NCBI GenBank assembly: GCA_026770705.1
Contig: JANJGN010000052.1
Span: forward strand, 434,001-498,000
DNA: 64,000 nucleotides
Origin: Isurus oxyrinchus
Lineage: Eukaryota
Reading direction: 5' to 3'
The notes below the pieces were generated by a model. The model was not told where the DNA came from and did no database searches. It saw only the letters and a list, made by a program, of their open reading frames with translations. Position 1 is the first letter of the stretch. Each line of letters starts with the position of its first letter. Made by a program: the position numbers and the translations under genes. Positions 1-62,636 of the stretch are shown here, one piece after another.

Positions 1-69
1 GGTCTCCCCCTCGCCAGTTGCGTCTCTCTTTGTGTTCTGGGGCTCAGTAATCAGCACGTTCTGTTTACC
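1..69 (-). CDS. Siglec-like gene A, start of terminal cytoplasmic exon (runs off the window)
   Basis: Acceptor ttctctgtag at 70-79, phase 0; reads GKQNVLITEPQNTKRDATGEGET, paralogous to the tail exons at 53158-53406 and 56083-56331. Confidence 0.85.
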
Positions 70-211
70 CTACAGAGAAATCGAAACAGAAGTTATCCTC
101 ACATCATTTACTGGCACTGATAGGGTTAAATTATTGTGCAGCCTTGTTAATGTCAGTCGTGTCTCAGTTGGTTTAACCCTCTCTCTCATGTCATATGAAA
201 GATACCACCTA

Positions 212-430
212 TGGCAGTGCAACGCTCCCTCAGGACTGACCCTCCGACAGTGCAGCACTCCCTCAGTACTGACCCTCCGACAGTGCAGCGCTCCCTCATT
301 ACTGACCCTCCGACAGTGCAGCGCTCCCTCAGTACTGACACTCCGACAGTGCAGCTCGCCCTCAGTACTGACCCTCCGACAGTGCAACACTCCCTCAGTA
401 CTGACCCTCTGTCAGTCTTGCACTCCCTCG
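212..430. repeat. 33-bp tandem minisatellite (cagtactgagggagtgctgcactgtcggagggt family), intronic
   Basis: Unit seen directly; gives 11-aa periodic ORFs (TDPPTVQHSLS). From memory it resembles a segment of shark Deu-domain SINEs. Confidence 0.9.
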
Positions 431-579
431 GTAATGGTTCTGGTGAGTGACAGTTGGATTCTGCACTCAAGTGTCTGGTGTGAAGCTCATTAACATGCAC
501 CTTGTAATCAGAGAGAGGATGAGAGAGAGAGAAAGAGAGAGAGAGAGAAAGAAAGGGAGGTTGGGATAGAGAGAGAGAC

Positions 580-1333
580 TGTCATGATGCGATTAATAAA
601 TATCATGTTATTGGAAATTATTTTTATTCACATCGGGGTTTAGTCTGTGGGTGTGTCTGTGTGTGTTTTAATTGGATTAAAGCCAGCCAGTCTGGGTATT
701 TGATGTATAGTAGTTTTGAGATGTAAACTGAGGCATAAAAATTTGTATTTTTAAACAGAGCATTCAAAACCTGAGAGTGAAATCTTAAACCAATCAATAT
801 TTATTTTATTGATAAAATTGATACTATGACAGAGGATTTATTGTTTGAAGGGATGGAGTTCAAAGGTCCTGATGATACAATTAGAATTTACATTCAAAGA
901 GAAGAGCTGGGTATAACTTGAGCAGTTTTGTGTGTGCAGAGCAGAGGCTTGTAACATCAAAGCAGCTGTAAGCCTACACCTGTCTGCAAAGGAACCAAAG
1001 TGAAAGGAACCTCATTTGGAATTTGTGAGGTGAAAATGCTTTGCCTGGGTGTCTGCTTAAATTCTATGGGTTATCTTAGAGGAGATTAGTTTGGGAATTT
1101 GTTAAAAAGTTATGATAATACTAGTTTGTAGCCATGTGCATATGTTTAACTTGTGTTAATTAATAAATGGCTCATGTAGTTTGATATAAAACCATCTCGA
1201 GAACTGGTGGTCTTATTCCTGAATTTAGAGCTGCATCTCAAACATTCCACTGGGAAATATAGGTTATGACAGTTGTTTAAAGTTTCCCTCTGGGATTTTA
1301 AACAACAGTCTTTACCAGTTGCTGTGTCATAAC
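580..1333. mobile_element. Probable solo LTR in tail intron
   Basis: Begins tgtcatg and ends cataaca (TG...CA); related copies at ~48408-49220, ~53950-54684 and ~56902-57650. Confidence 0.6.
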
Positions 1334-1469
1334 AGAGAGACAGCATGATACTGAACCATTGCTGACTCCACAGGTACAAATCAGTGGGTAACTGGGCTGG
1401 GAATCTGGGACATGTGTTGTCTACACACTGAGATTGAAGCTTTGGAGTGAGTGTAAACAGCTCCTGTAC

Positions 1470-1551
1470 CTGGTGCTTCACAGAGAGTGAACTGGGGCTC
1501 AATGCAATGTCACTGGTCCCTGAAACTCTCTCCTCCATCGCTGTCTTTCTC
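1470..1551 (-). CDS. Gene A cytoplasmic exon 1
   Basis: 82 nt, ttgcag acceptor and CAG|gtacag donor, phase 2 to 0; (K)RKTAMEERVSGTSDIALSPSSLSVKHQ; joins the TM and terminal exons in frame. Confidence 0.85.
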
Positions 1552-2273: not shown

Positions 2274-2370
2274 TTTCTCACACAGATGAAGATGAAGATT
2301 CCAGCCAGGAAAACACTCAACATGATCCCAGCCGTGAACAATCCTACTGTCCATTTACTGGAGTCTCTAC
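2274..2370 (-). CDS. Gene A transmembrane exon, uncharged (inhibitory-type)
   Basis: 97 nt, ttttacag acceptor and AA|gtaagt donor; (G)RDSSKWTVGLFTAGIMLSVFLAGIFIFICVRK; identical to 58840-58936. Confidence 0.9.
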
Positions 2371-3656: not shown

Positions 3657-3950
3657 CTTTGACCCACAGATACATCTTGAACATGGCTTCCCCATGTGGG
3701 TTTTGAACCGAGCAGGATGCAATCACTCCCCCCTCATCCTGGGGTCTCATCAGGGTGAGGAAACCAGTCACCAGATGCCCATCTCTGACCTGCCACGACA
3801 CAAAACCTCCGTGTGTTTGGTTACCACTGATGTTCGCACTGGGCAGGTGCCAGGTGAGGTCTCCGGGTGGGTTGGAGGTGGCCACACAGACGCAGGTGAC
3901 CCCCTCTGATCTCCGAGTGCACTCCGACTGCTGGGAAATCTCCGGCTTAT
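3657..3950 (-). CDS. Gene A membrane-proximal C2-set Ig exon (MAG domain 5 / Siglec-5/10-type)
   Basis: 294 nt, phase 1-1; KPEISQQSECTRRSEGVTCVCVATSNPPGDLTWHLPS...SCSVQNPHG; the C-x8-CxC..SNP pattern resembles MAG domain 5. Confidence 0.85.
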
Positions 3951-5942: not shown

Positions 5943-6222
5943 GTTCCACAGTGATGGTTATGAACCCCTCCACTGCTCCATGTTCATTCTCTGCCACACA
6001 CTGATAGTCTCCAGTGTCCCTGGATGTAACGTGAGGAATCACCAACCACAGCTCATTGTTGCAACTTGTTCTGTTCATTGGGACATTAAGATGTCGCCAC
6101 GTCAGGTTAGAAGCTGGGAAGCTCTCGACAGAGCAGATTATCACTGCAGAATTCCGCTCAATTATGTTGATCGATGAAGCGTTAATCATATCAAGAGAAG
6201 TAATTGATGGGTTCCGGTGCAT
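5943..6222 (-). pseudogene. Gene A C2-set exon with a 2-nt deletion (frameshifted)
   Basis: 280 nt versus 282 nt in paralogs; splice sites intact; in phase 1 it reads HAPEPINYFS*. Confidence 0.75.
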
Positions 6223-7064: not shown

Positions 7065-7102
<38 letters not shown>

Positions 7103-7124: not shown

Positions 7125-7406
7125 GTTCCACAGTGATGGTTATGAACCCCTCCACTGCTCCATGTTCATTCTCTGCCACACACAGATAGTCTCCAGTGTC
7201 CCTGGATGTAACGTGAGGAATCACCAACCACAGCTCATTGTTGGAACTTGTTCTGTTCATTGGGACATTAAGATGTCGCCACGTCAGGTTAGAAGCTGGG
7301 AAGCTCTCGACAGAGCAGATTATCACTGCAGAATTCCCCTCAATTATATTGACCGATGAAGCGTTAATCATATCAAGAGAAGTAAATGAGAGATTCTGTG
7401 GAGCAT
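7125..7406 (-). CDS. Gene A C2-set Ig exon (type b)
   Basis: 282 nt, phase 1-1; DAPQNLS...IICSVESFPASNLTW...DTGDYLCVAENEHG. Confidence 0.9.
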
Positions 7407-8379: not shown

Positions 8380-9390
8380 ACTGCCAACAAATTTATCTCA
8401 GTAAGGAACATGGCACTGCCAACCCCGTCAATACCATCTTCTAAACGGGGGATTGGGTAGGAATCTGGTTTTATTGCTGCATTAACCTTTCTGTAATGTA
8501 TGCAGAATCTGGTTGGAAATGAAATACCTGCTCCTTTTTACCTCCCTCCCTACGATGGTATCGTTTTAACATATTGATGTGTCACAGCCGATTCTTTATT
8601 CTACAATCTGGGGTGTGTATCAAATAATTTACTTGACCAACCCTCCTAATTACCTTGTGGGGACCACTGAACCGCGCTTTCAGAGGCTCCCCCTGCCAAG
8701 GCAATGATACTAACACGTCATCCCCCTGGTTGAGATGTTCGGGTCACAGCTTGCCTGTCTACCCCATTCCTTCATCTCTGTTTGAGAAACTATAAGATGT
8801 TCTTGTGCCACTTTGGAGGCTCCCATGAGCCGTTCCTGAAACATGGACACATCATCTGAAATAGAGGATTCATCCCTCTGTCCGGAATATCTTTCTTTGA
8901 TGAATTTCAGACAGCCTCTTATCTCGTGTCCATAAGTTATTCCAAAAAGACTAAAACCTGCCGATTCAGTTGGTGAATCTCGTGTGGGAAATGCAAGAAA
9001 ATCCAGTCCTTTGTCCCAGTCATGGGGAGTTCATGACAATAGCTTCAATCATTGTTTTGAGGGTTTGTTGGTCCCTCTCTAAAGATCCCCGTGTCTATGG
9101 ATGATATGCTGTGGACTTTAACTGTTTTATACCCAAATTACTCATTATGTTCGGAAAATTTTAAGACATAGAGATGGAACCTTGATCTGACTGGATCTCC
9201 AGCGGTAATCCATAATGGGTAAAAAATTGGGTTAACTTCCCTATTACTACTTTAGCTGTAATTGTTCCTAAAGGGATGGTCTCTGGAAATCGAGTTGTCA
9301 TATCCATCATAGTGAGGCCATACTGGAGTCCGGCTTTCATTTTCGATAATGGTCTAACACAGTCCACTAATGCTCGTATCCAATGGTAAC
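8380..9390 (-). mobile_element. Gypsy-type LTR retrotransposon integrase remnant
   Basis: LTMMDMTTRFPETIPL...KLTQFFTHYGLPLEIQSDQGS matches the integrase core; degraded. Confidence 0.75.
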
Positions 9391-9519
9391 GGACAATTAG
9401 CTCACTGGAGGAGGGGAATCCACAAATATCCCCATCCTCAATGAACGGGGAGCCCAGCACATCAGGGCAAAAGATAAGGCTGAAGCATTTGCTACAACAA
9501 TTATCCATTTCTGTCTGGC

Positions 9520-11932: not shown

Positions 11933-12229
11933 CTTGTACAGTTAGTACAAGGGTCCGCTCCGATGAAACAGATGGATATCTCACTCTGCAGCTGAGAGTG
12001 TGTCCGTGGTGTTTGAGTGATGGGATCAGGGTTAGAACAGAAGTATAGGTCAGAGTGACACCATGCTGAGTTACAGTGTTTGACACTGATCCAGGTACGT
12101 CAGTGGGAGTGTCCCAGGTTAAGACAGGTGCTGCTGTTCCATTGCACGTTGTGTTGAAGGTGCAGCTTACATCCACACGCTTTCCTGCAATAATTTCAGC
12201 AGGGAATATCATGGGTTTATCTGTGAAAT
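11933..12229 (-). CDS. Gene A Siglec domain-2 C2-set exon (type a)
   Basis: 297 nt, phase 1-1; DFTDKP...VSCTFNTTCNGTAAPVLTW...YTSVLTLIPSLKHHGHTLSCRV, with the extra BC-loop Cys typical of Siglec domain 2. Confidence 0.92.
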
Positions 12230-13042: not shown

Positions 13043-13411
13043 CAGAAACGTGAAGCTGGGTTACAGGGTAATAGTTATGGCTCCGACCATTGTCAAATTC
13101 TATTCTGAAAAAATAAGGTCCTGCATCTTCCCGTCTGATGTTGTTTATAATCAGGGAACAGTCGCCATCTTTCAGGTCTCCAGACGGCCGGGTCCGATGG
13201 CGGAACCGTGGTAACTCGTGACTGTGATCCTTGGAGTGAAAGGCAATGGGAGCCCAGGGAATCTGTTCCTCATTATTAAACCAGAGTCCACCTCGCGGTT
13301 CGTTTTCCAGACACGATGGATAACTGTAATGACATGGAATCTGTACACACGAACCTTCCTGCGCTGTCACCTCTCGTGGAGTGTCACCTTTCCACTCTTG
13401 TGAGGGTTGAG
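13043..13411 (-). CDS. Gene A Siglec V-set exon (intact, second position)
   Basis: 369 nt; EGSCVQIPC, GDCSLII and DAGPYFFRIE with the essential sialic-acid Arg; ccccag acceptor and G|gtaagt donor. Confidence 0.93.
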
Positions 13412-16340: not shown

Positions 16341-16471
16341 GAGCAGAAATAGACAAATCATTAAAAATAGTGACGCTGGTTAACACGGCCAAAAAACAAG
16401 CAAATCAAACACTATTATTTCCCATTGAGTGTTGGATGTGAATTGTTGAGTAATTATAACACAGCACTTAC

Positions 16472-16849
16472 CAGAAACGTGAAGCTGGGTTACAGGGTAA
16501 TAGTTATGGCTCGGACGATTGCCAAATTTTATCATGAAAAAATAATATCCTGCATCTTCCCGTGTGATGTTGTTTATAATCAGGGAACAGTCGCCATCTT
16601 TCAGGTCTCCAGACAGCCGGGTCCGATGGCGGAACCATGGTAACTCGCGACTGTGACCCTTGGAGTGAAAGGCTATAGACCATTTAGACCATTTGTTCCG
16701 TATGTATCTTCTCATTTTCCAGATTCCGACCTGTGGTTTCTTTATCAAATCTGATGGCTAACTGTAATGACATGGAATCTGTACACACGAACCTTCCTGC
16801 GCTGTCACCTCTCGTGGAGTGTCACCTTTCCACTCTTGTGACAATCCAA
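16472..16849 (-). pseudogene. Gene A first V-set exon, inactivated
   Basis: 378 nt with intact splice sites, but an in-frame TAG at 16758-16760 (Y to stop) and the essential Arg replaced by Met (YFFMIK, 16533-16535). Confidence 0.85.
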
Positions 16850-22130: not shown

Positions 22131-22170
22131 CTTGGAGAAGTGACAGGAGGAAGTAAGATTTCCCGATCAT
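22131..22170 (-). CDS. Gene A signal peptide exon (coding part)
   Basis: MIGKSYFLLSLLQ+G, donor AAG|gtaat, phase 1; upstream acceptor ttctctttcag at ~22213. Confidence 0.85.
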
Positions 22171-22620
22171 TGTCCACTCCCAGATATTTCATAAGCTTCT
22201 GACTCTCAAACTCTGAAAGAGAAAGGAGTTAATGAGACCTCACCTCTTGTCCGACAGCTCTCAAGAGATCAGAACTGCTTTTGGACAATGTCTTGACAGA
22301 CTAATTTGATTCTCTGTGGGATGATAGGTGCTCTGCAGAGAGTTACAAGGCTTTAAGAAAGAAAAACATTGAAGGATTTGCATTTCTATAGCACCTTTCC
22401 CCAGCTCAAGACGTCCCAAAGCTCATGTCTCTGCACTTCCCTCATCCCTTGAGCTAGAAAGATGTTCTGTACAACAGACTTGAGTCTCACACCCAGATCT
22501 CAATAATCAGTAGAAATCTTTCAAAGGCATCAATCATTGGAATCTGTCTTTATAAAGTCACAACATCAACAAAGGACGGTGTTGGTGGTGGAAGTGAATT
22601 CCAATCGTTCCGTTACTTAC

Positions 22621-25381: not shown

Positions 25382-25521
25382 TCAAACAGTCTGTCGACTT
25401 CCTTTCACTGTTTGTCTCTCCCAGACACAGACTCCAGTGATAGTGATAACCACAGCCACAAGGAATATCACAGCTCGTATTCCCAGGATCAGGATCACGT
25501 GCAGAATCTCTCCTCCACTGT
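25382..25521 (-). CDS. Activating-type TM and short-tail terminal exon (gene D)
   Basis: Acceptor tgttctctag, phase 1; (Y)SGGEILHVILILGIRAVIFLVAVVITITGVCVWERQTVKGSRQTV*; Arg codon at 25475-25477 lies inside the hydrophobic span. Confidence 0.8.
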
Positions 25522-27184: not shown

Positions 27185-27337
27185 ATTCCACAGTAATGGT
27201 TATGAACCCCTCCACTGCTCCATGTTCATTCTCTGCCACACACTGATAGTCTCCAGTGTCCCTGGATGTAACGTGAGGAATCCCCAACCACAGATCATTG
27301 TTGGAAATTCTTCTGTTCATTTGGACATTCAGATGTC
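27185..27337 (-). pseudogene. Gene D 5'-truncated C2-set exon
   Basis: Only the 3' half (HLNVQMNRRISNNDLWLGIPHVTSRDTGDYQCVAENEHG...TVE) and the gtgagt donor remain; the 5' half is replaced by unrelated sequence. Confidence 0.8.
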
Positions 27338-27860: not shown

Positions 27861-28234
27861 CAGAAACGTGAAGCCGGGTTACAGGATAATAGTTATGGCT
27901 CGGACCATTGTCAAATTCTATTCTGAAAAAATAAGGTCCTGTATCTTCCCGTCTGATGTTGTTTATAATCAGGGAACAGTCGCCATCTTTCAGGTCTCCA
28001 GACAGCCGGGTCCGATGGCGGAATCTTTGATCCCTGTGACTGTGACCCTCGGAGTGAAAGGCTATAGACCATTTAGGCTGTGGGTTCCCATCTATTCCTT
28101 TCAACCAGATTCCGCACGTGATCTCCCTACGAAATTTGGTAAGTAACTGTAATGACATGGAATCGGTACACATGAACCTTCCTGTGCTGTCACCTCTCGT
28201 GGAGTGTCACCTTTCCACTCTTGTGACAGTCCAA
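27861..28234 (-). pseudogene. Gene D V-set exon, frameshifted
   Basis: 374 nt; 1-nt loss near 28113 splits the domain across two frames; YFFRIE Arg retained. Confidence 0.85.
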
Positions 28235-28937: not shown

Positions 28938-28977
28938 CTTGGAGAAGTGACAGGAGGAAGTAAGATTTCCCGATCAT
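28938..28977 (-). CDS. Gene D signal peptide exon
   Basis: MIGKSYFLLSLLQ+G, donor gtaata. Confidence 0.8.
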
Positions 28978-29427
28978 CGTCCACTCCCAGATATTCCATC
29001 CACTTCTCGCTCTCAAGCTGTGAAAGAGAAAGGAGTTAATGAGACCTCACCTCTTGTCCGACAGCTCTCGAGAGATCAGAACTGTTTTTAGACAATGTCT
29101 TCACAGACTAATTTGATTCTCTGTGGGATGATAGGTGCTCTGCAGAGAGATACAAGGCTTTAAGAAAGACAAACAATGAAGGATTTGCATTTCTATAGCA
29201 CCTTTCACCACCTCAGGACATCCCAAAGCTCATGTCTCTGCACTTCCCTCATCCCTTGAGCTAGAAAGATGTTCTGTACAACAGACTTGAGCCTCACACC
29301 CAGATCTCAATAATCAGTAGAAATCTTTCAAAGGCATCATTCATTGGAATCTCTCTTTATAAAGTCACAACATCAACAAAGGACGGTGTTGGTGGTGGAA
29401 GTGAATTCCAATCGTTCCGTTACTTAC

Positions 29428-33666: not shown

Positions 33667-33783
33667 TTATAAATTCCCATAAACAGAATCCTTGGCAAAA
33701 TCACAGTTTGCGTAAAGATCATCATCTGTATCAGGATTGACTCCGCGGTTAGATTTCATTTCCAGATCCTTCTCATCTTTCTT
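33667..33783 (-). CDS. Putative terminal cytoplasmic exon of gene C with two Tyr motifs
   Basis: Acceptor tttctattacag; phase 0 reads KKDEKDLEMKSNRGVNPDTDDDLYANCDFAKDSVYGNL*; downstream AATAAA at 32890-32895 and 32722-32727. Confidence 0.7.
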   Translation of the reverse strand, partial: KKDEKDLEMKSNRGVNPDTDDDLYANCDFAKDSVYGNL

Positions 33784-35424: not shown

Positions 35425-35529
35425 CTGATTCCTCAAAGCCCAATCACGATCACAGTTTTCATAAACAGGACCTCGATATTCATCAACACGATGGTTCGAT
35501 TTGATTCCTGCTTTCACCTCGCCTCTCTT
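35425..35529 (-). CDS. Putative penultimate cytoplasmic exon of gene C
   Basis: 105 nt, phase 0-0, ctattacag acceptor and CAG|gtgagt donor; KRGEVKAGIKSNHRVDEYRGPVYENCDRDWALRNQ; paralogous to 33667-33783. Confidence 0.6.
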
Positions 35530-35879: not shown

Positions 35880-36290
35880 AGATGTTCTGTACAACAAACC
35901 AGAGCCTCACACCCAGATCTCAATAATCAGTAGAAATCTTTCAAAGGCATCAATCATTGGAATCTGTCTTTATAAAGTCACAACATCAACAAAGGACGGT
36001 GTTGGTGGTGGAAGTGAATTCCAATCGTTCCGTTACTTACCCAGGACCTGTCCGACTGCTCGCCTGGGGAGGAACTGCCCACACGCTCTGCTTGGGCTGA
36101 ATGACCTCTTCCTGTGCTGCTCCCTCTGTGTATTTAATGAGAAAGGGTGGATGTCTCTCTGTGAGTCAAATCAGGAATTGGGGAACAATTGTGAAAACCC
36201 TTTCTCTGAAACGTAGGCCTTAGTGTTGTATTGTAAGCAAACTGTTAACCCTTTGTGTCCTGACTCTGTGACGTGATTCCTGTGTAAAGC
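35880..36290 (-). promoter_or_regulatory. Orphan copy of the promoter and exon 1 module with a degenerate PU.1 site
   Basis: Near-identical to 22460-22765 with donor at 36041; the site reads aaatcaggaattg; no leader exon follows. Confidence 0.55.
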
Positions 36291-36880: not shown

Positions 36881-36977
36881 TTTCTCACACACTTGAAAAT
36901 GAAGAATCCACTCAGTCCAACATTCAAACAGATTCCAGCTCCAAGCAATCCTGCTTTCCATTCATTGGAATCTCGCC
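36881..36977 (-). CDS. Gene C transmembrane exon (divergent)
   Basis: 97 nt, ttttacag acceptor and AA|gtaagt donor; (R)RDSNEWKAGLLGAGICLNVGLSGFFIFKCVRK. Confidence 0.85.
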
Positions 36978-38242: not shown

Positions 38243-38524
38243 GTTCCACAGTGATGGTTATGAACCCCTCCACTGCTCCATGTTCATTCTCTGCCACACA
38301 CTGATAGTCTCCAGTGTCCCTGGATGTAACGTGAGGAATCACCAACCACAGCTCATTGTTGGAACTTGTTCTGTTCATTGGGACATTAAGATGTCGCCAC
38401 GTCAGGTTAGAAGCTGGGAAGCTCTCGACAGAGCAGATTATCACTGCAGAATTCCCCTCAATTATATTGATCGATGAAGCGTTAATCATATCAAGAGAAG
38501 TAATTGAGAGGTTCTGTGGAGCAT
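38243..38524 (-). CDS. Gene C C2-set exon (type b, second copy)
   Basis: 282 nt, phase 1-1, open frame DAPQNLSITS...YQCVAENEHG. Confidence 0.9.
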
Positions 38525-39544: not shown

Positions 39545-39826
39545 ATTCCACAGTGATGGTTCTGAATCCCTCCACTGCTCCATGTTCATTCTCTGCCACA
39601 CACTGATAGTCTCCAATGTCCCTGGATGTAACGTGAGGAATCACCAACCACAGCTCATTGTTGGAACTTGTTCTGTTCATTGGGACATTAAGATGTCGCC
39701 ACGTCAGGTTAGAAGCTGGGAAGCTCTCGACAGAGCAGATTATCACTGCAGAATTCCCCTCAATTATATTGATCGATGAAGCATTAATCACATCAAGAGA
39801 AGTAATTGAGAGATTCTGTGGTGCAT
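39545..39826 (-). CDS. Gene C C2-set exon (type b, first copy)
   Basis: 282 nt; GT donor at 39543-39544, right next to the N run. Confidence 0.88.
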
Positions 39827-40769: not shown

Positions 40770-41066
40770 CTTGCACAGTTAGTATGAGGGTCTTTTCCGA
40801 TGACACAGATGGATATCTCACTCTGCAGCTGAGAGTGTGTCCGTGGTGTTTGAGTGATGGGATCAGGGTCAGAACACAAGTATAGGTCAGAGTGACACCA
40901 TGCTGAGTTACAGTGTTTGAGACTGATCCAGGTACGTCAGTGGGAGTGTCCCAGGTTAAGACAGGTGCTGCTGTTCCATTGCACGTTGTGTTGAAGGTGC
41001 AGCTTACATCCACACGCTTTCCTGCAATAATTTCAGCAGGGAATATCGTGGGTTTATCTGTGAAAT
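40770..41066 (-). CDS. Gene C Siglec domain-2 C2-set exon (type a)
   Basis: 297 nt; as 11933-12229 but with a Ser-to-Cys change (YTCVLTL). Confidence 0.92.
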
Positions 41067-41437: not shown

Positions 41438-41806
41438 CAGAAACGTGAAGCTGGGTTACAGGGTAATAGTTATGGCTCGGACCATTGTCAAATTCTATTC
41501 TGAAAAAATAAGGTCCTGCATCTTCCCGTCTGATGTTGTTTATAATCAGGGAACAGTCGCCATCTTTCGGGTCTCCAGACAGCCGGGTCCGATGGTGGAA
41601 CCGTGGTAACTCGTGACTGTGATCCTTGGAGTGAAAGGCAATGGGAGCCCAGGGAATCTGTTTCTCATTATTAAACCAGACTCCACCTCGCGGTTGGTGT
41701 TGCAGACACGATGGATAACTGTAATGACATGGAATCTGTACACACGAACCTTCCTGTGCTGTCACCTCTCGTGGAGTGTCACCTTTCCACTCTTGTGAGG
41801 GTTCAG
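41438..41806 (-). CDS. Gene C second V-set exon (intact)
   Basis: 369 nt; CVQIPCHYSYPSC, DCSL, YFFRIE. Confidence 0.92.
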
Positions 41807-43463: not shown

Positions 43464-43832
43464 CAGAAACGTGAAGCTGGGTTACAGGGTAATAGTTATG
43501 GCTCGGACCATTGTCAAATTCTATTCTGAAAAAATAAGGTCCTGCATCTTCCCGTCTGATGTTTTTTATAATCAGGGAACAGTCGTCATCTTTCAGGTCT
43601 CCAGACAGCCGGGTCCGATGGTGGAACCGTGGTAACTCGTGACTGTGATCCTTGGAGTGAAAGGCAATGGGAGCCCAGGGAATCAGTTTCTCATTATTAA
43701 ACCAGACTCCACCTCGTGGTTGGCTTTCCAAATGTGCTGGATAACTGTAATGACATGGAATCTGTACACACGAACCTTCCTGCGCTGTCACCTCTCGTGG
43801 AGTGTCACCTTTCCACTCTTGTGACAGTCCAA
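43464..43832 (-). CDS. Gene C first V-set exon (intact)
   Basis: 369 nt; CVQIPCHYSYPAH, DCSL, YFFRIE. Confidence 0.92.
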
Positions 43833-47260: not shown

Positions 47261-47300
47261 CTTGGAGAAGTGACAGGAGGAAGTAAGATTTCCCGATCAT
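47261..47300 (-). CDS. Gene C signal peptide exon
   Basis: MIGKSYFLLSLLQ+G, donor gtaata. Confidence 0.85.
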
Positions 47301-47750
47301 TGTCCACTCCCAGATATTTCCTCAGCTTCTAACTCTGAAGTTCTGAAAGAGAAAGGAGTTAATGAGACTTTGCCTCTTGTCCGAATGCTCTCGAGAGATC
47401 AGAACTGCTTTTAGACAATATCTTCACAGACAAATTTGATTCTCTGTGGGATGATAGGTGCTCTGCAGAGAGATACAAGGCTTTAAGAAAGAAAAACAAT
47501 GAAGGACTTGCATTTCTATAGCACCTTTCACCACCTCAGGATGTCCCCAAGCTCATGTCGCTGCTCTTCCCTCATCCCTTGAGCTAGAAAGATGTTCTGT
47601 ACAACAGACTTGAGCCTCACACCCAGATCTCAATAATCAGTAGAAATCTTTCAAAGGCATCAATCATTGGAATCTGTCTTTATAAAGTCACAACATCAAC
47701 AAAGGACGGTGTTGGTCGTGGAAGTGAATTCCAATTGTTCCGTTACTTAC

Positions 47751-51640: not shown

Positions 51641-53157
51641 CTTGCGTGCATTCAGATTAAGAACCTTTCTGTCTTTTCCCCATTTCCCCTACTCTGACCT
51701 TATTTGCTGGGACACTGGTTGATGCTGGTTTCAGTCTCAGTTTGTCTCAGTTGGTCACACTCTGGCCTCTGTCTCGAGACTGATGTTCCCTCTTGGTAGT
51801 GACAGTGATGGGGGTGTTGGGGAGGGTGTGGATATTGACCCCACTGGTCCCCCTCCCCCACTCCGCCATTCTATCCTGGGAGACCCGCCAGGATCCTTGT
51901 TCCAGCTGCGATGGGCAGCCCTTCCACATTTTCCTGTGGGCCCTGCACTTCATGTCTAAAAGCGCTAAGTTAGAGCAGGGATGGGGAATTGAACAGGGGG
52001 CGTGGGACGAGTGTGGGGGTTTCACAGCCAGAACTGACCCTGCCCACAACTCTGTGGAGGGGGAGAGGTTTCACCAGCTCTCTGTCTTTACAACATCGTA
52101 ACCACAGTGTGAAGATTGTCCCCATTCCCTGTATCTTAATAATATTGTAAAGACAACTGGGAGATGTCCTGCAGTCTCTGAGAAAGAATTTGGTGCGTCT
52201 ACAGCACCACCACTGGCAAGAGAGTGTAAGTACAGTGTGACATGTTTACATGGGAAATTTTCATGATAAATGTGGACACAAGAATTTTTGATAATTTGGT
52301 GGGGAAATGCAATGACATGAATTAACAGATTGGAGCAGGAAGGTTGTCCTGGAGTAAGATGTTTAATAAAAATATATCTGTACAGAGTTATCTGGGCATT
52401 TCAATCCCTTGTGACAATAAATGTAATATTATAGAAAATGCAAAAGCTTCTTGTAATCTATCACAGAATAAACAAATTGCAGAATTCAGAAAGCACATTC
52501 TGAAATGTTAACAAAGTTCAGTGACGTCACATTTCTGCTAATTACTATTCGGCCATGTTGGCTGCACGCAGTCAGGCAGTCCCTCGGTTGTGATGTGTCC
52601 ACACAGCAGGACTGGGATGTATCAGCATCAAAGGACATGCTTAGTTGTTGCCGTGCAATGCATTTATTGTGAGCCTGTTGCACATACGCCCTGTCGAAGG
52701 ATTCTCCGTGTTTGCATTCTGAATCGAGACAGATCAAAGTTACTACAACAACTTGCATTTATATAGCACCTTCAATGTAGCAAAATGTCCAAAGGCTCTT
52801 CAGGGGATTGTTCACTACATATAAATCCATCTCTGAGACACATAATGAGATATTAGGGACAGATGACCAAAAGCTGAGTTAACAAAGGCAGTTAATAAGG
52901 ACCATGTTAAAGGAGGAGAGAGAGAGAGACAGACTGATAGAGAGAGACAGAGAGAGACACTGAATATCTTTCCCCAATGGATCATCATCAAGTTGTCACT
53001 GGGTAAGAATTTCATTTCAAACCACGACAACCACAGACCCATTCAGTCCCTTCCTCCCTCTGTCCCCCTCTCCCCCAGTGGGTTGTCTCATGTTCCCAGG
53101 AATCATAATCCCTGCCCCCACCCACACACCTCCTCACCCCCTCTCCCCGTTTCACAC

Positions 53158-53406
53158 TCAGTTTCGCTTGAATCTGATCTGTGCGTATTCCGTCTCCTCT
53201 TCCCTGTGGACAGACCCATCACCACTGGACACCCTCAAAACTTGGGGATTGGCGTAGAGAAGCTCGTCGGAATTTTCGATGTGCCAATATCCAGCATTGC
53301 CTCCCACTGGACCTTCAGAGAGACCCTGGGGAGCTGGGGTCTCCCCCTCACTAGTTGTGTCTCTGGTTGTGTTCCGGGGCTCAGTAATCAGCACGTTCTG
53401 TTTACC
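53158..53406 (-). CDS. Gene B terminal cytoplasmic exon, distal duplicate
   Basis: 249 nt, phase 0; ...DELLYANPQ...ETEYAQIRFKRN*; AATAAA at 52663-52668. Confidence 0.85.
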   Translation of the reverse strand, partial: GKQNVLITEPRNTTRDTTSEGETPAPQGLSEGPVGGNAGYWHIENSDELLYANPQVLRVSSGDGSVHREEETEYAQIRFKRN

Positions 53407-54820
53407 CTACAGAGAAATGGAAACAGAAGACATCCTCACATCATTTACTGGCACTGATAGGGTTAAATTATTGTGCAGCCTCGTTAGTGTCAGTCGTGGC
53501 TCAGTGGGTTTAATCCTCCCTCATGTCATCTGAAAGAAACCACCTATGGCAGTGCAGTGCTCCCTCAGTACTGACCCTCTGATAGTGCAGTACTTCCTCA
53601 ATTCTGACCCTCCGACAGTGAAGCACTCCCTCAGTACTGACCCTCCGACAGTGCGGCACTCCCTCAGTACTGACCCTCTGTCAGTGCAGCACTCCCTCAG
53701 TACTGACCCTCTGTCAGTGCAGCACTTCCTCAGTACTGACCCTCCGACAGTGCAGCACTCCCTCAGTACTGACCCGCTGTCAGTCCCGCACTCCCTCGGT
53801 AATGGCTCTGGTGAGTGACGGCTTGGATTCTGCACTCAGGTACCTGGTGTGAGGCTCAATAACATGAACCTTGTAATCAGAGAGAGGATGAGAGAGAGGG
53901 AGAGAGAGAGAGGAAGGGATAGACACAGTGTTACTAACCTATTAACATATGTAATGTAATTGGAAATTTTCTTTTTAATAGAGGTTTAGTGTGTGGATGT
54001 GTCTGTGTGTGTTTTAATTGGATTAAAGCCAGCCAGTCTGGGTAATTCGATGTATAATAGTTTTGAGATGTAAACTGAGGGGTAAAGAAGCAATTTGTAT
54101 TTTTAAACAGAGCATTCAAGGCCTGAGAGTGAAATCTTAAACCAATCAACATTTATATTACTAATAAAATTGATACTATGACAGAGGATTTATTGTTAGA
54201 AGAGATGGAGTTCAAAGGTCCTGATGATACAATGAGAATTTACATTCAAAGAGAAGCATTGGGTATAACTTGAGCAGTTTTGTGTGAGCAGAGCAGAGGC
54301 TTGTAACAGCAAAGCAGCTGTAAGCCTACACCTGTCTGCAAAGGAACCAAAGTGAAAGGAACCTCATTTGGAATTTGTGAGGTGAAAATGCTTTGCCTGG
54401 AATCTGCTTAAAGTCTATGGGTTGTCTTAGAGGACGTTAGTTTGGGAATTTGTTAAATAGTTATGATAGTACTAGTTTGTAGCCATGTGCATATGATTAA
54501 CTTGTGAAAATTAATAAATGTCTCATGTAGTTTGATATAAACCCATCTCAAGAACTGATGGTCTTATTCCTGAATTTAGAGATGCATCTCAAACATTCCA
54601 CTGGGAAATATAGATTATGACAGTTGTTTAAAGTTTCCCTCTGGGATTTGAAACAACAGCCTTTACCAGTTGCTGTGTTATAACAGAGAGACAGCATGAT
54701 ACTGAACCATTGCTGACTCCACAGGTACAAATCAGTGGATAACTGGGCTGAGAATCTGGGACACGTGTTGTCTACACACTGAGATTGAAGCTTTGGAGTG
54801 AGCGTAAACAGCTCCTGTAC

Positions 54821-54902
54821 CTGGTGCTTCACAGAGAGTGGACTGGGAGTCAATGCCATGTCTCTGGTCCCTGAAACTCTCTCCTCCGTTGCTGTCTTTC
54901 TC
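54821..54902 (-). CDS. Gene B cytoplasmic exon 1, distal duplicate
   Basis: 82 nt, phase 2-0; RKTATEERVSGTRDMALTPSPLSVKHQ. Confidence 0.8.
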
Positions 54903-55848
54903 CTGCAATAACACAATATCACACTGTGGTTATCATATAGCAGAGAGTCAGTGCAGCACAGACACAGAGCCCACTGTAACCTTACACCAACGACTGGACT
55001 GACTCTTTAAATCACTTCTGCACAAAGCACAGAATCAAGAAGTTCGACATCATCCAGGACAAAGCAGCCCGATTGATCTACACCCCATCCACCACATTAA
55101 ACATTCACTCCCTCCACCACGAACACACAGCGGCAGCAGTGTGTGTACCAGCTACAAGATGCACTGCAGCAACTCAGCAAGGCTTCTTCGACAGCACCTT
55201 CCAAACCCACGACCTCTACCATCTAGAAGGACAAGGGCAGCAGACACATGGGAACACCACCACCTGGAAGTTCCCCTCCAAGTCACTCACCATCCTGACT
55301 TGGAAATATATCACCGTTCCTTCACTGTCGCTGGGTCAAAATCCTGGAAATCCCTCCCTAACAGCATTGTGGGTGTACCTACACCATATGCACTGCAGCG
55401 GGTCAAGAAGGCAGCTCGCCACCACCTTCTCAAGGGCAATTAGGGATGGGCATTAACGCTGACATCACCAGTGACAGCCACATTCGATGAAAGAATTAAA
55501 AATCACACAGATCAATGTATTTATTGTGACCCTGCTGCACACACGCCCTGTCGAAGGAGCCTTTGTGGTTCCATTGTTAATCGAAGCAGATCAGAGTTAC
55601 TACAACTACTTGCATTTATATAGCACCTTCAATGTAGCAAAATGTCCCAAGGCTCATCCGGGGATTGTTAGTCCATCTTCACCTGACTCTGAGGCACATG
55701 AGGAGATATTAGGGACAGGAGACCAACAGCTGAGTCAACAAAGTCAGTTATTAACGGGCATCTTAAAGGAGGAGCTGGAGATAGAGAATGAGAGACAGAC
55801 ACAGAAAGAAAGACAGAGACAGGGAGAGAGAGAGAGAGAGAGAGAGGG

Positions 55849-55883
<35 letters not shown>

Positions 55884-56082
55884 CAGTGAATCTCGGTCCC
55901 CAATGGCTCAGCATCCAGTCCTCTCTGGAGAAGCATTTCATTCCAAACCACACCAACCGCAGCCCAATTCCATCCCTTCCTCCCTCTCCCCCCTCTCCCC
56001 CAGTGGGTTGTTTCCTGTTCCCAGGAATCTCGATCACTACCCCCACCTTGATACCTCCTCACTCCCTCTCCCCGTTTCTCAT

Positions 56083-56331
56083 TCAGTTATGCTCGAACCT
56101 GATCTGTGCGTATTCCGTCTCCTCTTCTCTGTGGACAGACCCATCACCACTGGACACCCTCAAAACTTGGGGATTGGCGTAGAGAAACTCTTCAGGTTTG
56201 TCGATGTGCCAATGTCCAGCATCACCTCCCACTGCACCTTCAGAGAGACCCCGGGGAGCTGGGGTCTCCCCCTCACTAGTTGTGTCTCTGGTTGTGTTCC
56301 GGGGCTCAGTAATCAGCACGTTCTGTTTACC
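56083..56331 (-). CDS. Gene B terminal cytoplasmic exon, proximal copy
   Basis: 249 nt; ...EEFLYANPQ...ETEYAQIRFEHN*; AATAAA at 55520-55525. Confidence 0.88.
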   Translation of the reverse strand, partial: GKQNVLITEPRNTTRDTTSEGETPAPRGLSEGAVGGDAGHWHIDKPEEFLYANPQVLRVSSGDGSVHREEETEYAQIRFEHN

Positions 56332-57784
56332 CTACAGAGAAATGGAAACAGAAGCCATCTTCACATCATTTACTGGCACTGATAGGGTTAAATTATTGAG
56401 CAGCCTCATTAGTGTCAGTCTTGTCTCAGTGGGTTTAACCCTCTCTCTCATGTCATCTGAAAGATACCACCTATGGCAGTGCAGTGCTCCCTCTGTACTG
56501 ACCCCCCCGACTGTGCAGCACATCCTCAATAGTGACCCTCTGTCAGTCTCACACTCCCTCATTACTGACCCTCTGTCAGTCTCACACTCCCTCATTACTG
56601 ACCCTCTGTCAGTCTCGCACTCCCTCAGTACTGACCATCTGACAGTGCAGCACTCCCTCAGTACTGACCCTCTGACAGTGCAGCACTCCCTCAGTACTGA
56701 CCCTCTGACAGTGCAGCACTCCCTCAGTACTGACCTGCTGTCAGTCCCGCACTCCCTCGGTAATGGCTCTGGTGAGTGACAGATTGGATTCTGCACTCAG
56801 GTGTCTGGTGTGAGGCTCAATAACATGAAACTAGTAATCAGCAACAGGATGAGAGAGAGAGAGAGAGAGAACGAAAGGGACGTAGGGATGGAGACAGAGA
56901 CTGTCATGATGCGATTAATGAATATCATGTTTTTGGAAATTATTTTTGTTAAAATAGAGGTTTCATCTGTGGATGTGTCTGTGTGTGTTTTATTTGGATT
57001 AATTGGGTGCTTTGATATAAAGTAATTTTGAGATGTAAACAGGGAGGTAAAAAGGCAATTTGCATTTTTAAATAGAGCATTCAATGCCTGGGAGTGAAAT
57101 CTTAAATCAATCAACGTTTATATTACTAATAAAATTGATACTATGAAATCAGATTTATTGTTAGAAGAGATGGAGTTCAAAGGTCCTGATGATACAATGA
57201 GAATTTACATTCAAAGAGAAGCACTGGGTATAACTTGAGCAGTTTTGTGTGTGCAGAGCAGAGGCTTGTAACATCAAAGCAGCTGTAAGCCTACACCTGT
57301 CTGCAAAGGAACCAAAGTGAAAGGAACATTATTTGGAATTTGTGAGGTGAAAATGCTTTGCCTTGTGTCTGCTTAAAGTCTATGGGTTGTCTTAGAGGAG
57401 GTTAGCTGGAGAATTTGTTACAATGTCATGATAATACCAGTTTGTAGCCATGTGCATATGTTTAACTTGTGTAAATTAATAAATGTCTCATGTAGTTTAA
57501 TATACAACTATCTCGAGAACTGGTGGTCTTATTCCTGAATTTAGAGCTGCATCTCAAACATTCCACTGGGAAATATAGGTTATGACAGTTGTTTAAAGTT
57601 TCCCTCTGGGATTTTAAACAACAGCCTTTACCAGTTGCTGTGTCATAACAGAGAGACAGCATGATACTGAACCATTGCTGACTCCACAGTACAAATCAGT
57701 GGGTAACTGGGCTGGGAATCTGGGACACGTGTTGTCTACACACTGAGATTGAAGCTTTGGAGTGAGTGTAAACAGCTCCTGTAC

Positions 57785-57866
57785 CTGGTGTTTCACAGAG
57801 AGTGGACTGGGGGTCAATGCAATGTCACTGGTCCCTGAAACTCTCTCCTCCATCGCTGTCTTTCTC
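57785..57866 (-). CDS. Gene B cytoplasmic exon 1, proximal copy
   Basis: 82 nt, phase 2-0; RKTAMEERVSGTSDIALTPSPLSVKHQ. Confidence 0.85.
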
Positions 57867-58839
57867 CTGCAATAACACAATATCACACTGTGGTTATCAT
57901 ATAGCAGAGAGTCAGTGCAGCACAGACACAGAGCCCTCTGTAACCTTACACCAACGACTGGACTGACTCTTTAAATCACTTCTGCACAAAGCACAGAATC
58001 TAGAATCTCGACACCATCCACAACAAAGCAGCTCGATTGATCTACACCCCATCCACCACATTAAACATTCAGTCCCTCCACCATGAACACACAGTGGCAG
58101 CAGTGTGTGTACCATCTACAAGATGCACTGCAGCAACTCAGCAAGGCTTCTTCGACAGCACCTTCCAAACCCACGACCTCTACCATCTAGAAGGACAAGG
58201 GCAGCAGACACATGGGAACACCACCACCTGGAAGTTCCCCTCCAAGTCACTCACCATCCTGACTTGGAAATATATCACCGTTCCGTCACTGTCGCTGAGT
58301 CAAACTCCTGGAGCTCCCTCTCTAACAGCACTGTGGGTGTACCTACACCACATGGACTGCAGCGGGTCAAGAAGGCAGCTCACCAACACCTTCTCAAGGG
58401 GCAATTAGAGATGGGCAATTAATAGCGGCCTCACCAGAGACAGCCACATTCAATGAAAGCATTTAAAATCTCACAGCTCAGGAGGAAGCCACTCAGCCCA
58501 TCGTGCCTGTGCTGGCCCTTTGTAAAAACTGTCCAATTAGTCCCACTACCCAGACTGTTCAATCTTTCCTGATGGTTATAACCACCACTCCGGTTGTGTG
58601 GAATCACAAGGTGACCTGATACAATCCAGGAGTAATCGTGCAGAGTGAGGAATCTCTGGGTCTCGTGATCGTTTACCTGGATACAGGACAATGAAAGGTT
58701 CTCTCCGGATCACAGTGGACACAGGGATCACTTACGGAGAGGGAATTGGTGCTGATCCCAAGGGAAACAATCACCGACTTAAGGAAAGAACATTGAAGCA
58801 AATGCTTATATTAAAATCAAGTTAAATCTTCAGACTTAC

Positions 58840-58936
58840 TTTCTCACACAGATGAAGATGAAGATTCCAGCCAGGAAAACACTCAACATGATCCCAGCCG
58901 TGAACAATCCTACTGTCCATTTACTGGAGTCTCTAC
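58840..58936 (-). CDS. Gene B transmembrane exon, uncharged
   Basis: 97 nt, identical to 2274-2370. Confidence 0.9.
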
Positions 58937-59589
58937 CTGTAAAAACAGCCATTAATTACTGCACTACAGGTTTACAATGATGCTCCGATGTATCTCGAGA
59001 AGCGATACACTCACTCAGTGTTTAAATACTCATTCTCGGGCAATGCTGACATTTATTGTCCATCCCTAGTTTCCCTTGAGAAGGTGGTGGGGGGTCTTCC
59101 TCCTGAACCACTGGTTTGTCCCAAACTGGGAGACCAGTTCAGAGGGCAGGTAAGAGTTAACCATGTTGGTGTTACAGACTGGAGTCACATACACACCCAG
59201 ACCAGTTAAAATGGACAGGTTTCCCTCCCTAAAGGGACATTAGTGACCCACCCTATACATGTGATCTCTATATACGTATCAACCAACATCACTAAAATAA
59301 TACATTATCAGATCACTGTCACCTTGCTTTGTGGGATCTTGCTGTGCACAGGTTGGTGCCGTGTTTCCTACATTACAACATGACATTGCTTCAAACATAT
59401 ATCGTTGACTGTAAAGTGTTTCGGGACGATCTGATCATTCAATAAATACAGGTCACCCTTTTCAATGCATCATTTATTGATAATGTTATCAATGAAATAT
59501 ATGAATATTAATCAATCTCCAATTTCTGCCTGTTTACTGTTGACTAAAACCTGTCAAGACCCTGAGTCACATGAGGTGATGTCAGGGAC

Positions 59590-60480
59590 AGATGACCTTG
59601 TGAAGAGGGTGTAAGGAGGCTACAAATTGACAGAGAGAGGTTAAGTGAATGGGCAAAAAGTGCACAATGTGGGGAAATGTGACATTGTCCATTTTGACAG
59701 GGAGAATAAAAAAGTAGCTTATTATCTCAATGGTGAGAGATTGCAGAGCTCTGAGATTCAGAGGGATCTGGGTGTCCTAGTGCATGAATCGCAAAAGGTT
59801 AGTGTGTAGGAACAGCAGGTAATTCGGAAAGCGAATAGAATGTTATGATTTACTGTGAGGGGCATTGAATCCAAACGTAGGGAGGTTACACTTCAGTTAT
59901 ACAGGGGGCTGGGGAGACCACATCTGGAGCTTTGTGTTCAGTATTGGCCTCCTTATTTAGGGAAAGGTGTAAATGCATCAGGAGCAGTTCAGAAAAGGTT
60001 TATTGGACCAACACCAGGAATGGGCGGGTTGTCTTATGAGGACGGGCTGGACAAGTTAGACTTGTATCCACTGGAATTTAGAAGAGGAAGGGGAGACCTG
60101 ATTGAGAGATTTAAGATCCTGAGGGGCCTTGACAGGGTGGATGTCGGGAGGATGTTTCCTCTTGTGGAAGAAGCTAGAACTAGGCGTCACTGATTAAAAA
60201 TAAGGGTTTGATCATTTATGACAGAGATGAGGAGAAAATGTTTCCTCTCAGAGGGTCGTGAGGCTTTGGAACTCTTCCTGAAAAGGCAGGAAACAGAGTC
60301 TTTGAATATTTTTAAGGCGCAGCTCGATAGATTCTTGATTCACAAAGGGGTGAAAGGTCATCAGGGGTGAGCAGGGAATGTGGGGTGGAGGTTACAATCC
60401 ATGACCTTATGGAAAGGTGGAACAGGCTCGAGGGGCTGAGTGGCCTCCTCCTGCTCCTCATTCCTGTGTTCGTATGTTTG
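59590..60480 (+). mobile_element. CR1 LINE 3' fragment
   Basis: LQLYRGLGRPHLELCVQYWPP...RGDLIE. Confidence 0.88.
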
Positions 60481-61242
60481 TTTCACCAAAAGCTTTGTCA
60501 AAGAGATTGGTTTTAAGGAGCGTCCAAACTGAATGTTTCAACACAGCCCAAAAACCAGGACAGTGATCCAGAGTGATCCAGTGTGGNNNNNNNNNNNNNN
60601 NNNNNNNNNNNNNNNNNNNNNNNNNNNNNNNNNNNNNNNNNNNNNNNNNNNNNNNNNNNNNNNNNNNNNNNNNNNNNNNNNNNNNNNNNNNNNNNNNNNN
60701 NNNNNNNNNNNNNNNNNNNNNNNNNNNNNNNNNNNNNNNNNNNNNNNNNNNNNNNNNNNNNNNNNNNNNNNNNNNNNNNNNNNNNNNNNNNNNNNNNNNN
60801 NNNNNNNNNNNNNNNNNNNNNNNNNNNNNNNNNNNNNNNNNNTCTAGGTGTGTATGTGTGCGTGCGTCTGTGTNNNNNNNNNNNNNNNNNNNNNNNNNNN
60901 NNNNNNNNNNNNNNNNNNNNNNNNNNNNNNNNNNNNNNNNNNNNNNNNNNNNNNNNNNNNNNNNNNNNNNNNNNNNNNNNNNNNNNNNNNNNNNNNNNNN
61001 NNNNNNNNNNNNNNNNNNNNNNNNNNNNNNNNNNNNNNNNNNNNNNNNNNNNNNNNNNNNNNNNNNNNNTGACAGCTGCACTATCGGGGGGTCAGTAGGA
61101 AGGGAGCTCTGCAATGTCAGAAGTGAATTTTTATCAATAAAAGCAGATGCTCTATTGTTAAACAAACTGTAGTTTATGGGTTTTTACTGTGTACCATGTG
61201 GACTATAATGGCCAAATTAGAATAAAGGGTGTCTGTACTTAC

Positions 61243-61539
61243 CTTGTACAGTTAGTACGCGGGTCCGCTCCGATGAAACAGATGGATATCTCACTCTGCA
61301 GCTGAGATTGTGTCCGTGGTGTTTGAGTGATGGGATCAGGGTCAGAACAGAAGTATAGGTCAGAGTGACACCATGCTGAGTTACAGTGTTTGAGACTGAT
61401 CCAGGTACGTCAGTGGGAGTGTCCCAGGTTAAGACAGGTGCTGCTGTTCCATTGCACGTTGTGTTGAAGGTGCAGCTTACATCCACACGCTTTCCTGCAA
61501 TAATTTCAGCAGGGAATATCGTGGGTTTATCTGTGAAAT
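61243..61539 (-). CDS. Gene B Siglec domain-2 C2-set exon
   Basis: 297 nt, phase 1-1, open frame. Confidence 0.92.
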
Positions 61540-62267
61540 CTAACACACAGAAAATGGATCCTTTTAGAGAAATATAACGTGAAGCATCAGTTCAAATAGA
61601 AATCACAATCCCACAAGAGAAAGCACTTTTACAAGGATGATATCAGAACTGAGAGATTACAATGATCAGGAGAGAATTTCCTGCTTTGACACTTTGGTGT
61701 TTCTGTCTCTCAGCGTAATACACGTTCACTCCGAGACACTTGAACTGATAATAGTGGGTGAGGGTGGTGGAGCAGACCAGAGTTTGGAGTGCACTACCCC
61801 ATCATTCACTCAGCGATCTGGGCCATTTATTACTTTGCAATTTGTGGGAGCTTGCTGTGTGCAAATTGGCTGCTGTGTTTCTCACATTACAACAGTAAAT
61901 ACAATTCAGGAATCAGCTCATTGGCTGTGAAGTGATTTGGTACGTTCTGAGGTGGTGAAAGGCGCTATAGAAATGTGAATCTTTCTTATGTCGATATGTC
62001 AGACTTCGAGACAGGATTAGAGAGATCGATGGGAGTGGATAACCTGATAACATTGATGGACACAGTCAATATATTTAATCATTGATATTAAAGTGAGTAT
62101 TAGAGGTTGCTTTAGGACTGAACTGGAAGCTATCACCAGGTTATTGAGAATCAGACAGTGTGTTATAATAAGCTGTGTTTTGTGCTAATATGTAAATGTC
62201 ACAGTTTGTGTTATTTCCCACTGAGTGTTGAATGTGAATTGTTGAGTAATTATAACACAGCACTTAC

Positions 62268-62636
62268 CAGAAACGTGAAGCTGGGTTACAGGGTAATAGT
62301 TATGGCTCGGACCATTGTCAAATTCTATTCTGAAAAAATAAGGTCCTGCATCTTCCCGTCTGATGTTGTTTATAATCAGGGAACAGTCGCCATCTTTCAG
62401 GTCTCCAGATAGCCGGGTCCGATGGCGGAACCGTGGTAACTCGTGACTGTGATCCTTGGAGTGAAAGGCAATGGGAGCCCAGGGAATCTGTTTCTCATTA
62501 TTAAACCAGACTCCACCTCGCGGTTGGTTTTCCAGACACGATGGATAACTGTAATGACATGGAATCTGTACACACGAACCTTCCTGCGCTGTCACCTCTC
62601 GTGGAGTGTCACCTTTCCACTCTTGTGACAGTCCAA
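62268..62636 (-). CDS. Gene B V-set exon (intact)
   Basis: 369 nt; CVQIPCHYSYPSC, DCSL, YFFRIE. Confidence 0.93.

Follow-up and report, generated by a model that had tools for sequence, protein, structure and literature searches.

The 64,000-nucleotide stretch of Isurus oxyrinchus DNA analysed here (contig JANJGN010000052.1, positions 434,001 to 498,000, hereafter the window) carries on its minus strand four Siglec-type receptor genes arranged head-to-tail, which we term B, C, D and A in order from high to low coordinates. In the reading we favour, to which we give a probability of about 0.7, the window is part of a large elasmobranch-wide family of Siglec-type receptors, in which a single exon kit, made up of a leader, a V-set exon present once or twice, and exons C2a, C2b and C2c, ends in one of three signalling modules. 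The cluster is real, as are its three endings, and chance does not account for them; functional pairing is suggested by sequence motifs and by analogy with known paired receptors.

Gene models were built by aligning database proteins to the window exon by exon and then reading the splice sites; the resulting exon map and phases agree with those of shark RefSeq models. Gene B comprises a V exon, a C2a exon, a gap, a neutral membrane span and two tail exons, with the tail cassette present twice. Gene C has a leader, two intact V exons, a C2a exon, two C2b exons, a neutral span and three tail exons. Gene D consists of a leader, a V exon, the 3' half of a C2b exon, and an Arg-bearing span followed by a 12-residue tail. 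Gene A contains a leader, a decayed and an intact V exon, a C2a exon, a gap, a C2b exon, a frame-broken C2b exon, a C2c exon and a neutral span, with tail exons running off the window start. A preliminary description of this DNA proposed four minus-strand genes sharing leader, V and C2 exons; the four genes and the identity of the leader stand, but there are six V exons rather than four, gene D has only half a C2 exon and falls outside the C2 kit, and the leader of gene B, with the rest of its 5' end, lies beyond the window. The leader exon (MIGKSYFLLSLLQ) is identical in three copies, which sit 0.7-5.3 kb upstream of the V exons and were located only through homologs:

47261..47342 (-): leader of gene C, with its ATG at 47300
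28938..29017 (-): leader of gene D, with its ATG at 28977; RNA-like sequencing runs show splice joints at both ends (28938 and 29017)
22131..22212 (-): leader of gene A, with its ATG at 22170

The six Siglec-type V exons on the minus strand include four intact copies of 369 nucleotides, one with a stop codon and one frameshifted:

62268..62636 (-): gene B V exon, V2 type, 369 nucleotides, intact
43464..43832 (-): first V exon of gene C (V43), 369 nucleotides, intact, a mosaic of V1-type 5' flank and V2-type body
41438..41806 (-): second V exon of gene C, V2 type, 369 nucleotides, intact
27861..28234 (-): gene D V exon (V28), V1 type, 374 nucleotides, frameshifted in the assembly
16472..16849 (-): decayed V exon of gene A (V16), V1 type, with an in-frame TAG and YFFR changed to YFFM
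13043..13411 (-): V exon of gene A, V2 type, 369 nucleotides, intact

Acceptor (TCTCTCCCCAG), donor (CACGTTTCTG/GTAAGT) and phase (1-1) are the same in all of them, and a motif search agrees with the earlier observation that CVQIPC, DCSL and YFFRIE recur, always on the minus strand. Their assignment to the Siglecs (I-type lectins) holds at the level of sequence comparison. The top 17 distinct PDB chains matched by the V exon are all Siglecs (E 1.3e-15 to 2.3e-12), with Siglec-5 (1.3e-15) followed by Siglec-7, -8, CD33, MAG, Siglec-10 and sialoadhesin, while the best non-Siglec match, pIgR, reaches 9e-9 over 39 residues only. The alignment to Siglecs covers both B-strand Cys, the E-strand Cys and YFFR, with CVQIPC and DCSL facing CVLVPC and NCSL of Siglec-5. 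Pfam searches return V-set (3e-12, passing its cut-off), Ig_CD22 (5e-9; 37.1 bits against a cut-off of 27) and C2-set_2 (6e-9). A typical Siglec has a CxxxxC pair of Cys in strand B, a single Cys in strand E and, in the first C2 domain, another Cys for an inter-domain bond; the strand-F Arg of its V domain contacts the sialic acid carboxylate. In the window this Arg is present in five of the six V exons, where it aligns with that of Siglec-5 and Siglec-7; V16 has Met in its place in addition to the stop. Because the V exons keep both the Siglec Cys pattern and the sialic-acid-contacting Arg, sialylated glycans would be the likely ligand of the V domains.

The C2 exons agree with this assignment, which the preliminary description had also made:

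61243..61539 (-): gene B C2a exon, 297 nucleotides
40770..41066 (-): gene C C2a exon
39545..39826 (-): gene C C2b exon 1, 282 nucleotides, donor GT abutting the gap 39405-39542
38243..38524 (-): gene C C2b exon 2, 282 nucleotides
27185..27332 (-): gene D C2b exon, 3' half only; the 5' half is missing and an in-phase acceptor was not found
11933..12229 (-): gene A C2a exon
7125..7406 (-): gene A C2b exon 1, 282 nucleotides
5943..6222 (-): gene A C2b exon 2, 280 nucleotides, frame-broken with stops in the assembly
3657..3950 (-): gene A C2c exon, 294 nucleotides

The C2a, C2b and C2c exons match the Pfam families C2-set_2, Ig_3 and I-set, and C2a matches domain 2 of MAG and CD33. The sequences SCTFNTTC and SCRV of C2a hold the extra Cys of the first Siglec C2 domain.

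A search of 1.84 billion representative proteins found 1386 relatives. Those closest to the window are RefSeq models from some 20 sharks and rays, under the names Siglec-5, -7, -8, -10 to -15, CD33-like or MAG-like, which bears out the cartilaginous-fish origin supposed earlier. Amino acid identity per exon to great white and basking shark models is 88-98%, with the great white highest; in P0168, one of its activating models, the V domain matches that of gene B at 98.4% identity. The great white RefSeq models show all three endings, sited together on single scaffolds, and RefSeq models with three or four V domains exist as well. A length-limited homolog search with a great white model returned elasmobranch proteins only. 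In a V-domain tree, for which the named mammalian anchors were taken from ten cluster look-ups and which has only 13 named tips, the elasmobranch clade including the V exons of the window has a Shimodaira-Hasegawa-like (SH-like) support of 0.905 and the clade of tetrapod CD33-related and Xenopus sequences 0.995. The join between elasmobranchs and tetrapods has an SH-like value of 0.46, teleost CD22 falls outside, and the nearest named tips among those 13 are shark MAG/SMP-like proteins (SH-like 0.48). Since the clades are separate and their join is weak, the tree leans towards an independent, lineage-specific expansion rather than orthology with the mammalian pairs. The expansion had been regarded earlier as independent or very old; an old, lineage-specific expansion within elasmobranchs fits the presence of the Arg-span exon in catshark and bamboo-shark models. 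As to its being poorly described, we found no description of a shark or ray Siglec cluster in the literature searched, but RefSeq already names Siglec- or CD33-like genes in many sharks and rays by automatic prediction, if inconsistently; the family is thus new to the papers searched, not to the databases.

Three types of ending occur in the window, one in genes A and B, one in gene C and one in gene D. The exons of the first type are:

58840..58936 (-): exon for the neutral membrane span of gene B, RDSSKWTVGLFTAGIMLSVFLAGIFIFICVR
57785..57866 (-): gene B cytoplasmic exon 1
56086..56331 (-): cytoplasmic exon 2 of gene B, containing FLYANPQV, TEYAQI and stop, and an internal GT donor after TEYAQIR at 56100
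54821..54902 (-): gene B second cassette, cytoplasmic exon 1'
53161..53406 (-): gene B second cassette, exon 2', with LLYANPQV, TEYAQI and stop
2274..2370 (-): gene A neutral membrane-span exon, same protein as gene B
1470..1551 (-): gene A cytoplasmic exon 1
1..69 (-): gene A cytoplasmic exon 2, start only, the window edge cutting off the rest

The membrane spans of genes A and B are identical in protein and neutral, and their tails are 89% alike in DNA, as expected from the earlier claim of a neutral span with a paralogous tail carrying YxN and a switch motif in gene B. The tail of gene B reads ...FLYANPQV...TEYAQIRFEHN and that of its second cassette ...LLYANPQV...TEYAQIRFKRN. TEYAQI fits the immunoreceptor tyrosine-based switch motif (ITSM), but YANP, with Pro at +3, is not a canonical immunoreceptor tyrosine-based inhibitory motif (ITIM); relatives in catshark, basking shark and epaulette shark retain LLYASI or LLYINV at this proximal site. 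A neutral span with a decayed ITIM and an ITSM would most likely recruit SH2 phosphatases or adaptors and dampen signalling. The two-exon cassette of gene B is duplicated in tandem (52916-55514 and 55842-58480, 89% identity). Because great white and basking shark RefSeq models (P0160, P0181, P0183) splice cassette 1 to cassette 2 after TEYAQIR, and the internal donor at 56100 is present, gene B may make a doubled tail.

The second type of ending, in gene C, has a different span and an unrelated tail:

36881..36977 (-): gene C neutral membrane-span exon RDSNEWKAGLLGAGICLNVGLSGFFIFKCVR, matching relatives and with proper splice sites
36041..36125 (-): gene C cytoplasmic exon 1 GSSTGRGHSAQAERVGSSSPGEQSDRSW
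35425..35529 (-): gene C cytoplasmic exon 2, with DEYRGP and VYENC, phase 0-0; an exon shared with P0180, a model of basking shark
33667..33783 (-): gene C last coding exon, with LYANC, SVYGNL and stop

The divergent span and the YENC/YANC/SVYGNL tail noted in the preliminary description thus lie on real exons with AG and GT sites, and a basking shark model has the same three-exon tail. With three YxN motifs behind a neutral span, this ending would most likely couple to Grb2-type adaptors; its C-terminal motif, SVYGNL, also fits an ITIM. An earlier candidate for the span of gene C, at 37188-37250, came from a first hydrophobicity scan and was replaced by the exon at 36881-36977, which matches relatives and has proper sites. 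The intron between the last two coding exons of gene C is occupied by a 24-bp minisatellite (33882-35295, 59 copies, 88% matches).

The third type of ending is encoded by a single exon of gene D:

25382..25521 (-): gene D exon for an Arg-containing membrane span (LGIRAVIF) and a 12-residue Tyr-free tail, stop

This exon, reading ...ILILGIRAVIFLVAVVITITGVCVW-ERQTVKGSRQTV-stop, is as the preliminary description had it; its acceptor is good and its phase, 1, matches that of the V donor. With its Arg buried in the span and hardly any tail, this ending would most likely pair with an acidic adaptor carrying an ITAM (immunoreceptor tyrosine-based activation motif), of the DAP12 or FcR-gamma type, and activate the cell. 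The exon is 78-93% identical to the ending of RefSeq models from great white, cloudy catshark, small-spotted catshark and bamboo shark. Because such exons occur in great white, catshark and bamboo-shark models, sequence comparison places the origin of the Arg-span ending before the split of those shark orders.

For gene D we also examined sequencing runs over 24900-29600, namely one DNA run of the same species and three runs guessed to be RNA, all present as short contigs. A GT-AG joint from 28938 to 28234 on the minus strand, that is from leader to V exon, is seen in all three RNA-like runs and is absent from the DNA run, which confirms the leader-to-V splice for gene D or a close paralog. 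Over the Arg-span exon the depth rises 10-20 fold above the flanks in two of the RNA-like runs and is flat in the DNA run; at position 25438 both variants are seen in RNA-like runs, the window's own included. One extra base behind 28114 is carried by all contigs of the same-species DNA run and by those of the RNA-like run X6. With a placeholder base at that position V28 becomes 375 nucleotides long and open throughout, with SRxGIW as in V1 of basking shark. Because the contigs of these runs carry an extra base that opens the exon, the frameshift of V28 is probably an assembly error or an allele.

The outer exons of genes A, B and C appear to have been homogenised, as had been suggested. In an alignment of the three genes, the V exon together with some 120 bp on its upstream side and some 200 bp on its downstream side is 95-100% identical, and so is C2a with roughly 100 bp upstream of it; just past C2a the value drops to about 65%, and the intron cores are 25-85% identical or unalignable. 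The V exons are 95-98% identical among these genes, and gene D has a V exon of the V1 type, which is more divergent. The 5' flanks of the six V regions are of two kinds, and V43 joins a V1-type 5' flank to a V2-type body and 3' flank. Exon dS (synonymous divergence) is 0.01-0.09, and most V differences alter the amino acid. The islands of identity at V and C2a above divergent introns, together with the mosaic V43, point to gene conversion, a process described for Siglec-11/16 (PMC5701461), which would keep V and C2a near-identical among genes with different endings.

Two observations on the V copies may be added. The V2-type exons (62269-62634, 41439-41804 and 13044-13409) encode an additional Cys (SYPSCLEN) in the B-C region, where V43 (43465-43830) has AH, and differences between the copies concentrate in the loop of that region and in the next loop. 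Directly downstream of V16, where its 3' flank loses similarity to the other copies, lies a reverse-transcriptase fragment (RVT_1, 1e-8, 15951-16379, minus strand).

Several points weigh against the favoured reading. Genes A and B have no canonical ITIM, as their proximal [FL]LYANP has Pro at +3 and only the ITSM and YxN are kept; gene A carries two decayed exons that need to be skipped; and gene D has a V exon that is frameshifted in the assembly and no intact C2 exon. The joint from V28 to the Arg-span exon is not among the 15 joints listed, a further 218 lying outside the listing, which is no evidence of its absence. The RNA status of the runs is a guess, their contigs are short, and at 93% likeness they possibly come from close paralogs; besides, every search was run exon by exon. 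Because gene D has no intact C2 exon and a V-to-Arg-span splice was not seen, pairing within the window is something we only infer, as we do for a functional gene D. The paired inhibitory and activating layout of the preliminary description therefore survives in part: near-identical V exons in A, B and C and an Arg-span exon in the same cluster are there, but its "inhibitory" genes are without a canonical ITIM and its "activating" gene is reduced.

The most likely of the rivals is one in which the cluster is real, gene D is a decaying remnant, and pairing exists only family-wide, at other loci. Gene D indeed has a V exon of 374 nucleotides and half a C2b exon whose in-phase acceptor was not found, and is without C2a, whereas the activating great white models have the order V-C2a-span; the joints listed include none from V28 to the span, and decay is also evident in gene A. 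On the other hand, the extra base in the DNA run and in X6 opens V28, the acceptor of the Arg-span exon is good and in phase with the V donor, the exon is strongly over-represented in RNA-like runs that include the window's own variant at 25438, and V-V-span models without any C2 domain are present in RefSeq (P0002). We consider this alternative less likely than not, though it has the strongest claim among the rivals.

Less probable still is that the V domains are Siglec-like without binding sialic acid, belonging to lineage-specific immunoglobulin receptors with other ligands (proteins or pathogen structures), for which the Siglec names are best-hit labels. Similarity to mammalian Siglecs is 30-40%, the varied RefSeq names speak for no one-to-one orthology, the link to tetrapod CD33-related proteins is weak in the tree, and the V copies differ mostly by amino acid changes. 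Yet every intact copy, like the relatives, keeps the YFFR Arg and all the Siglec Cys (two in strand B, one in strand E and the extra one in C2), the Siglec-specific model Ig_CD22 scores above its cut-off, and the sole copy that lost the Arg, V16, also has a stop codon.

The window holds five N runs, all of them intronic and beside CA-rich simple sequence, and no reading frame crosses a gap. At the gap 39405-39542 the donor GT of the C2b exon of gene C, which ends at 39545, forms the last bases before the gap (39544-39543), and an exon may be concealed within a gap, most plausibly C2b of gene B. A weak integrase-core fragment (9164-9544, minus strand) lies beside a gap in the large intron of gene A. 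That the repeated genes are uncollapsed haplotypes or mis-joins around these gaps, which interrupt three of three multi-exon genes in an assembly shown by the one-base difference from reads at 28114 to be imperfect, is very improbable, as the genes lie head-to-tail on one strand and single great white scaffolds bear the same three-ending arrangement. The copies are not haplotypes, because they differ by 4-13% in DNA and have distinct introns, transposon insertions, exon content and unrelated end exons.

Under the favoured reading of an elasmobranch-wide family with one exon kit and three endings, the closest parallels are the human paired receptors Siglec-5/Siglec-14 and Siglec-11/Siglec-16 (PMC4042635, PMC5701461). 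As in these pairs, near-identical, gene-converted outer V/C2 exons are attached to endings of opposite type, and the shark Arg-bearing ending resembles the activating forms Siglec-14 and Siglec-16 in its basic span residue and very short tail. Unlike them, the shark genes form a clade of their own and would have paired independently, have a third, YxN-rich ending, and include two genes with tandem V exons; moreover, the inhibitory-type tails of the window have lost the canonical ITIM and its activating gene is without an intact C2 domain. With the mammalian CD33-related Siglecs they share the V-set plus C2-set architecture, clustered fast-evolving genes and pseudo-exons, best PDB matches to Siglec-5, -7, -8 and CD33, and a distal motif TEYAQI of the TEYSE[IV] type; they differ in that there is no one-to-one orthology and MAG is nearly as close (54.7 versus 55-61 bits). 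CD33-related proteins are characterized by a proximal ITIM and a distal ITIM-like motif or ITSM; the window has the distal TEYAQI and, at the proximal site, a motif with Pro at +3. Two V-set domains in tandem before C2, found in gene C and, with one decayed, in gene A, recall primate Siglec-12 (Siglec-XII), hence the many RefSeq "Siglec-12" labels; unlike Siglec-12, both V exons of gene C keep the key Arg, and some shark models have as many as three or four V domains. Great white and basking shark models in RefSeq (XP_041037177-80, XP_078389734 and others) have the same kit and endings, and the value of the window is limited insofar as RefSeq already predicts orthologous genes in great white and other species.

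According to a teleost-focused paper, which leaves sharks unmentioned, fish have only Siglec-1, CD22, MAG and Siglec-15 and are without CD33-related Siglecs (PMC7226832). Contrary to this view of fish, sharks and rays have dozens of CD33-like genes with inhibitory-, YxN- and activating-type endings. It is possible, at a little under even odds, that elasmobranchs independently evolved a three-state Siglec sensing system, with dampening, Grb2-type YxN and ITAM-coupled Arg-span outputs on gene-converted tandem-V ectodomains, dating back at least to the last ancestor shared by lamniform, carcharhiniform and orectolobiform sharks. Provided that the endings function in the way their motifs indicate, paired sensing of sialic acid would have arisen more than once and be recurrent in jawed vertebrates rather than mammalian, and sharks would offer an independent natural experiment on sialic-acid-mimicking pathogens driving receptor pairing and gene conversion.

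Some minor observations concern the leaders and the spacers. A scan for an ATG plus a hydrophobic run immediately 5' of each V exon found no leader there. In two of the three leaders (28938-29017 and 22131-22212) there is a further ATG upstream that opens a different frame (MEYLGVDDD... and MKYLGVDND...), and the great white RefSeq isoform XP_041037179 begins in that frame and enters the V exon at an internal site. A near-exact copy of cytoplasmic exon 1 of gene C lies 410-490 bp upstream of each leader (47751-47835, 29428-29512 and 22621-22705, minus strand), with both splice sites retained and about 300 bp at >=97% identity. The idea that the leader exon derives from a tail exon was dropped, as homology with the gene C tail ends about 250 bp before the leader. 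In RNA-like runs the donor of one upstream copy (29428) is joined to the leader acceptor 29017, and the leader donor 28938 is also joined back to the acceptor 29512; the upstream copy could be a co-opted exon of the 5' untranslated region, read-through from the upstream gene or part of a two-exon circular RNA, or the reads could come from a paralog. Finally, seven separate arrays of a single 33-bp satellite unit, TCAGTACTGAGGGAGTGCTGCACTGTCAGAGGG or the complement of it, are spread over introns and spacers of the cluster (215-433, 22980-23253, 23471-23892, 24106-24439, 39959-40650, 53543-53801 and 56487-56762).

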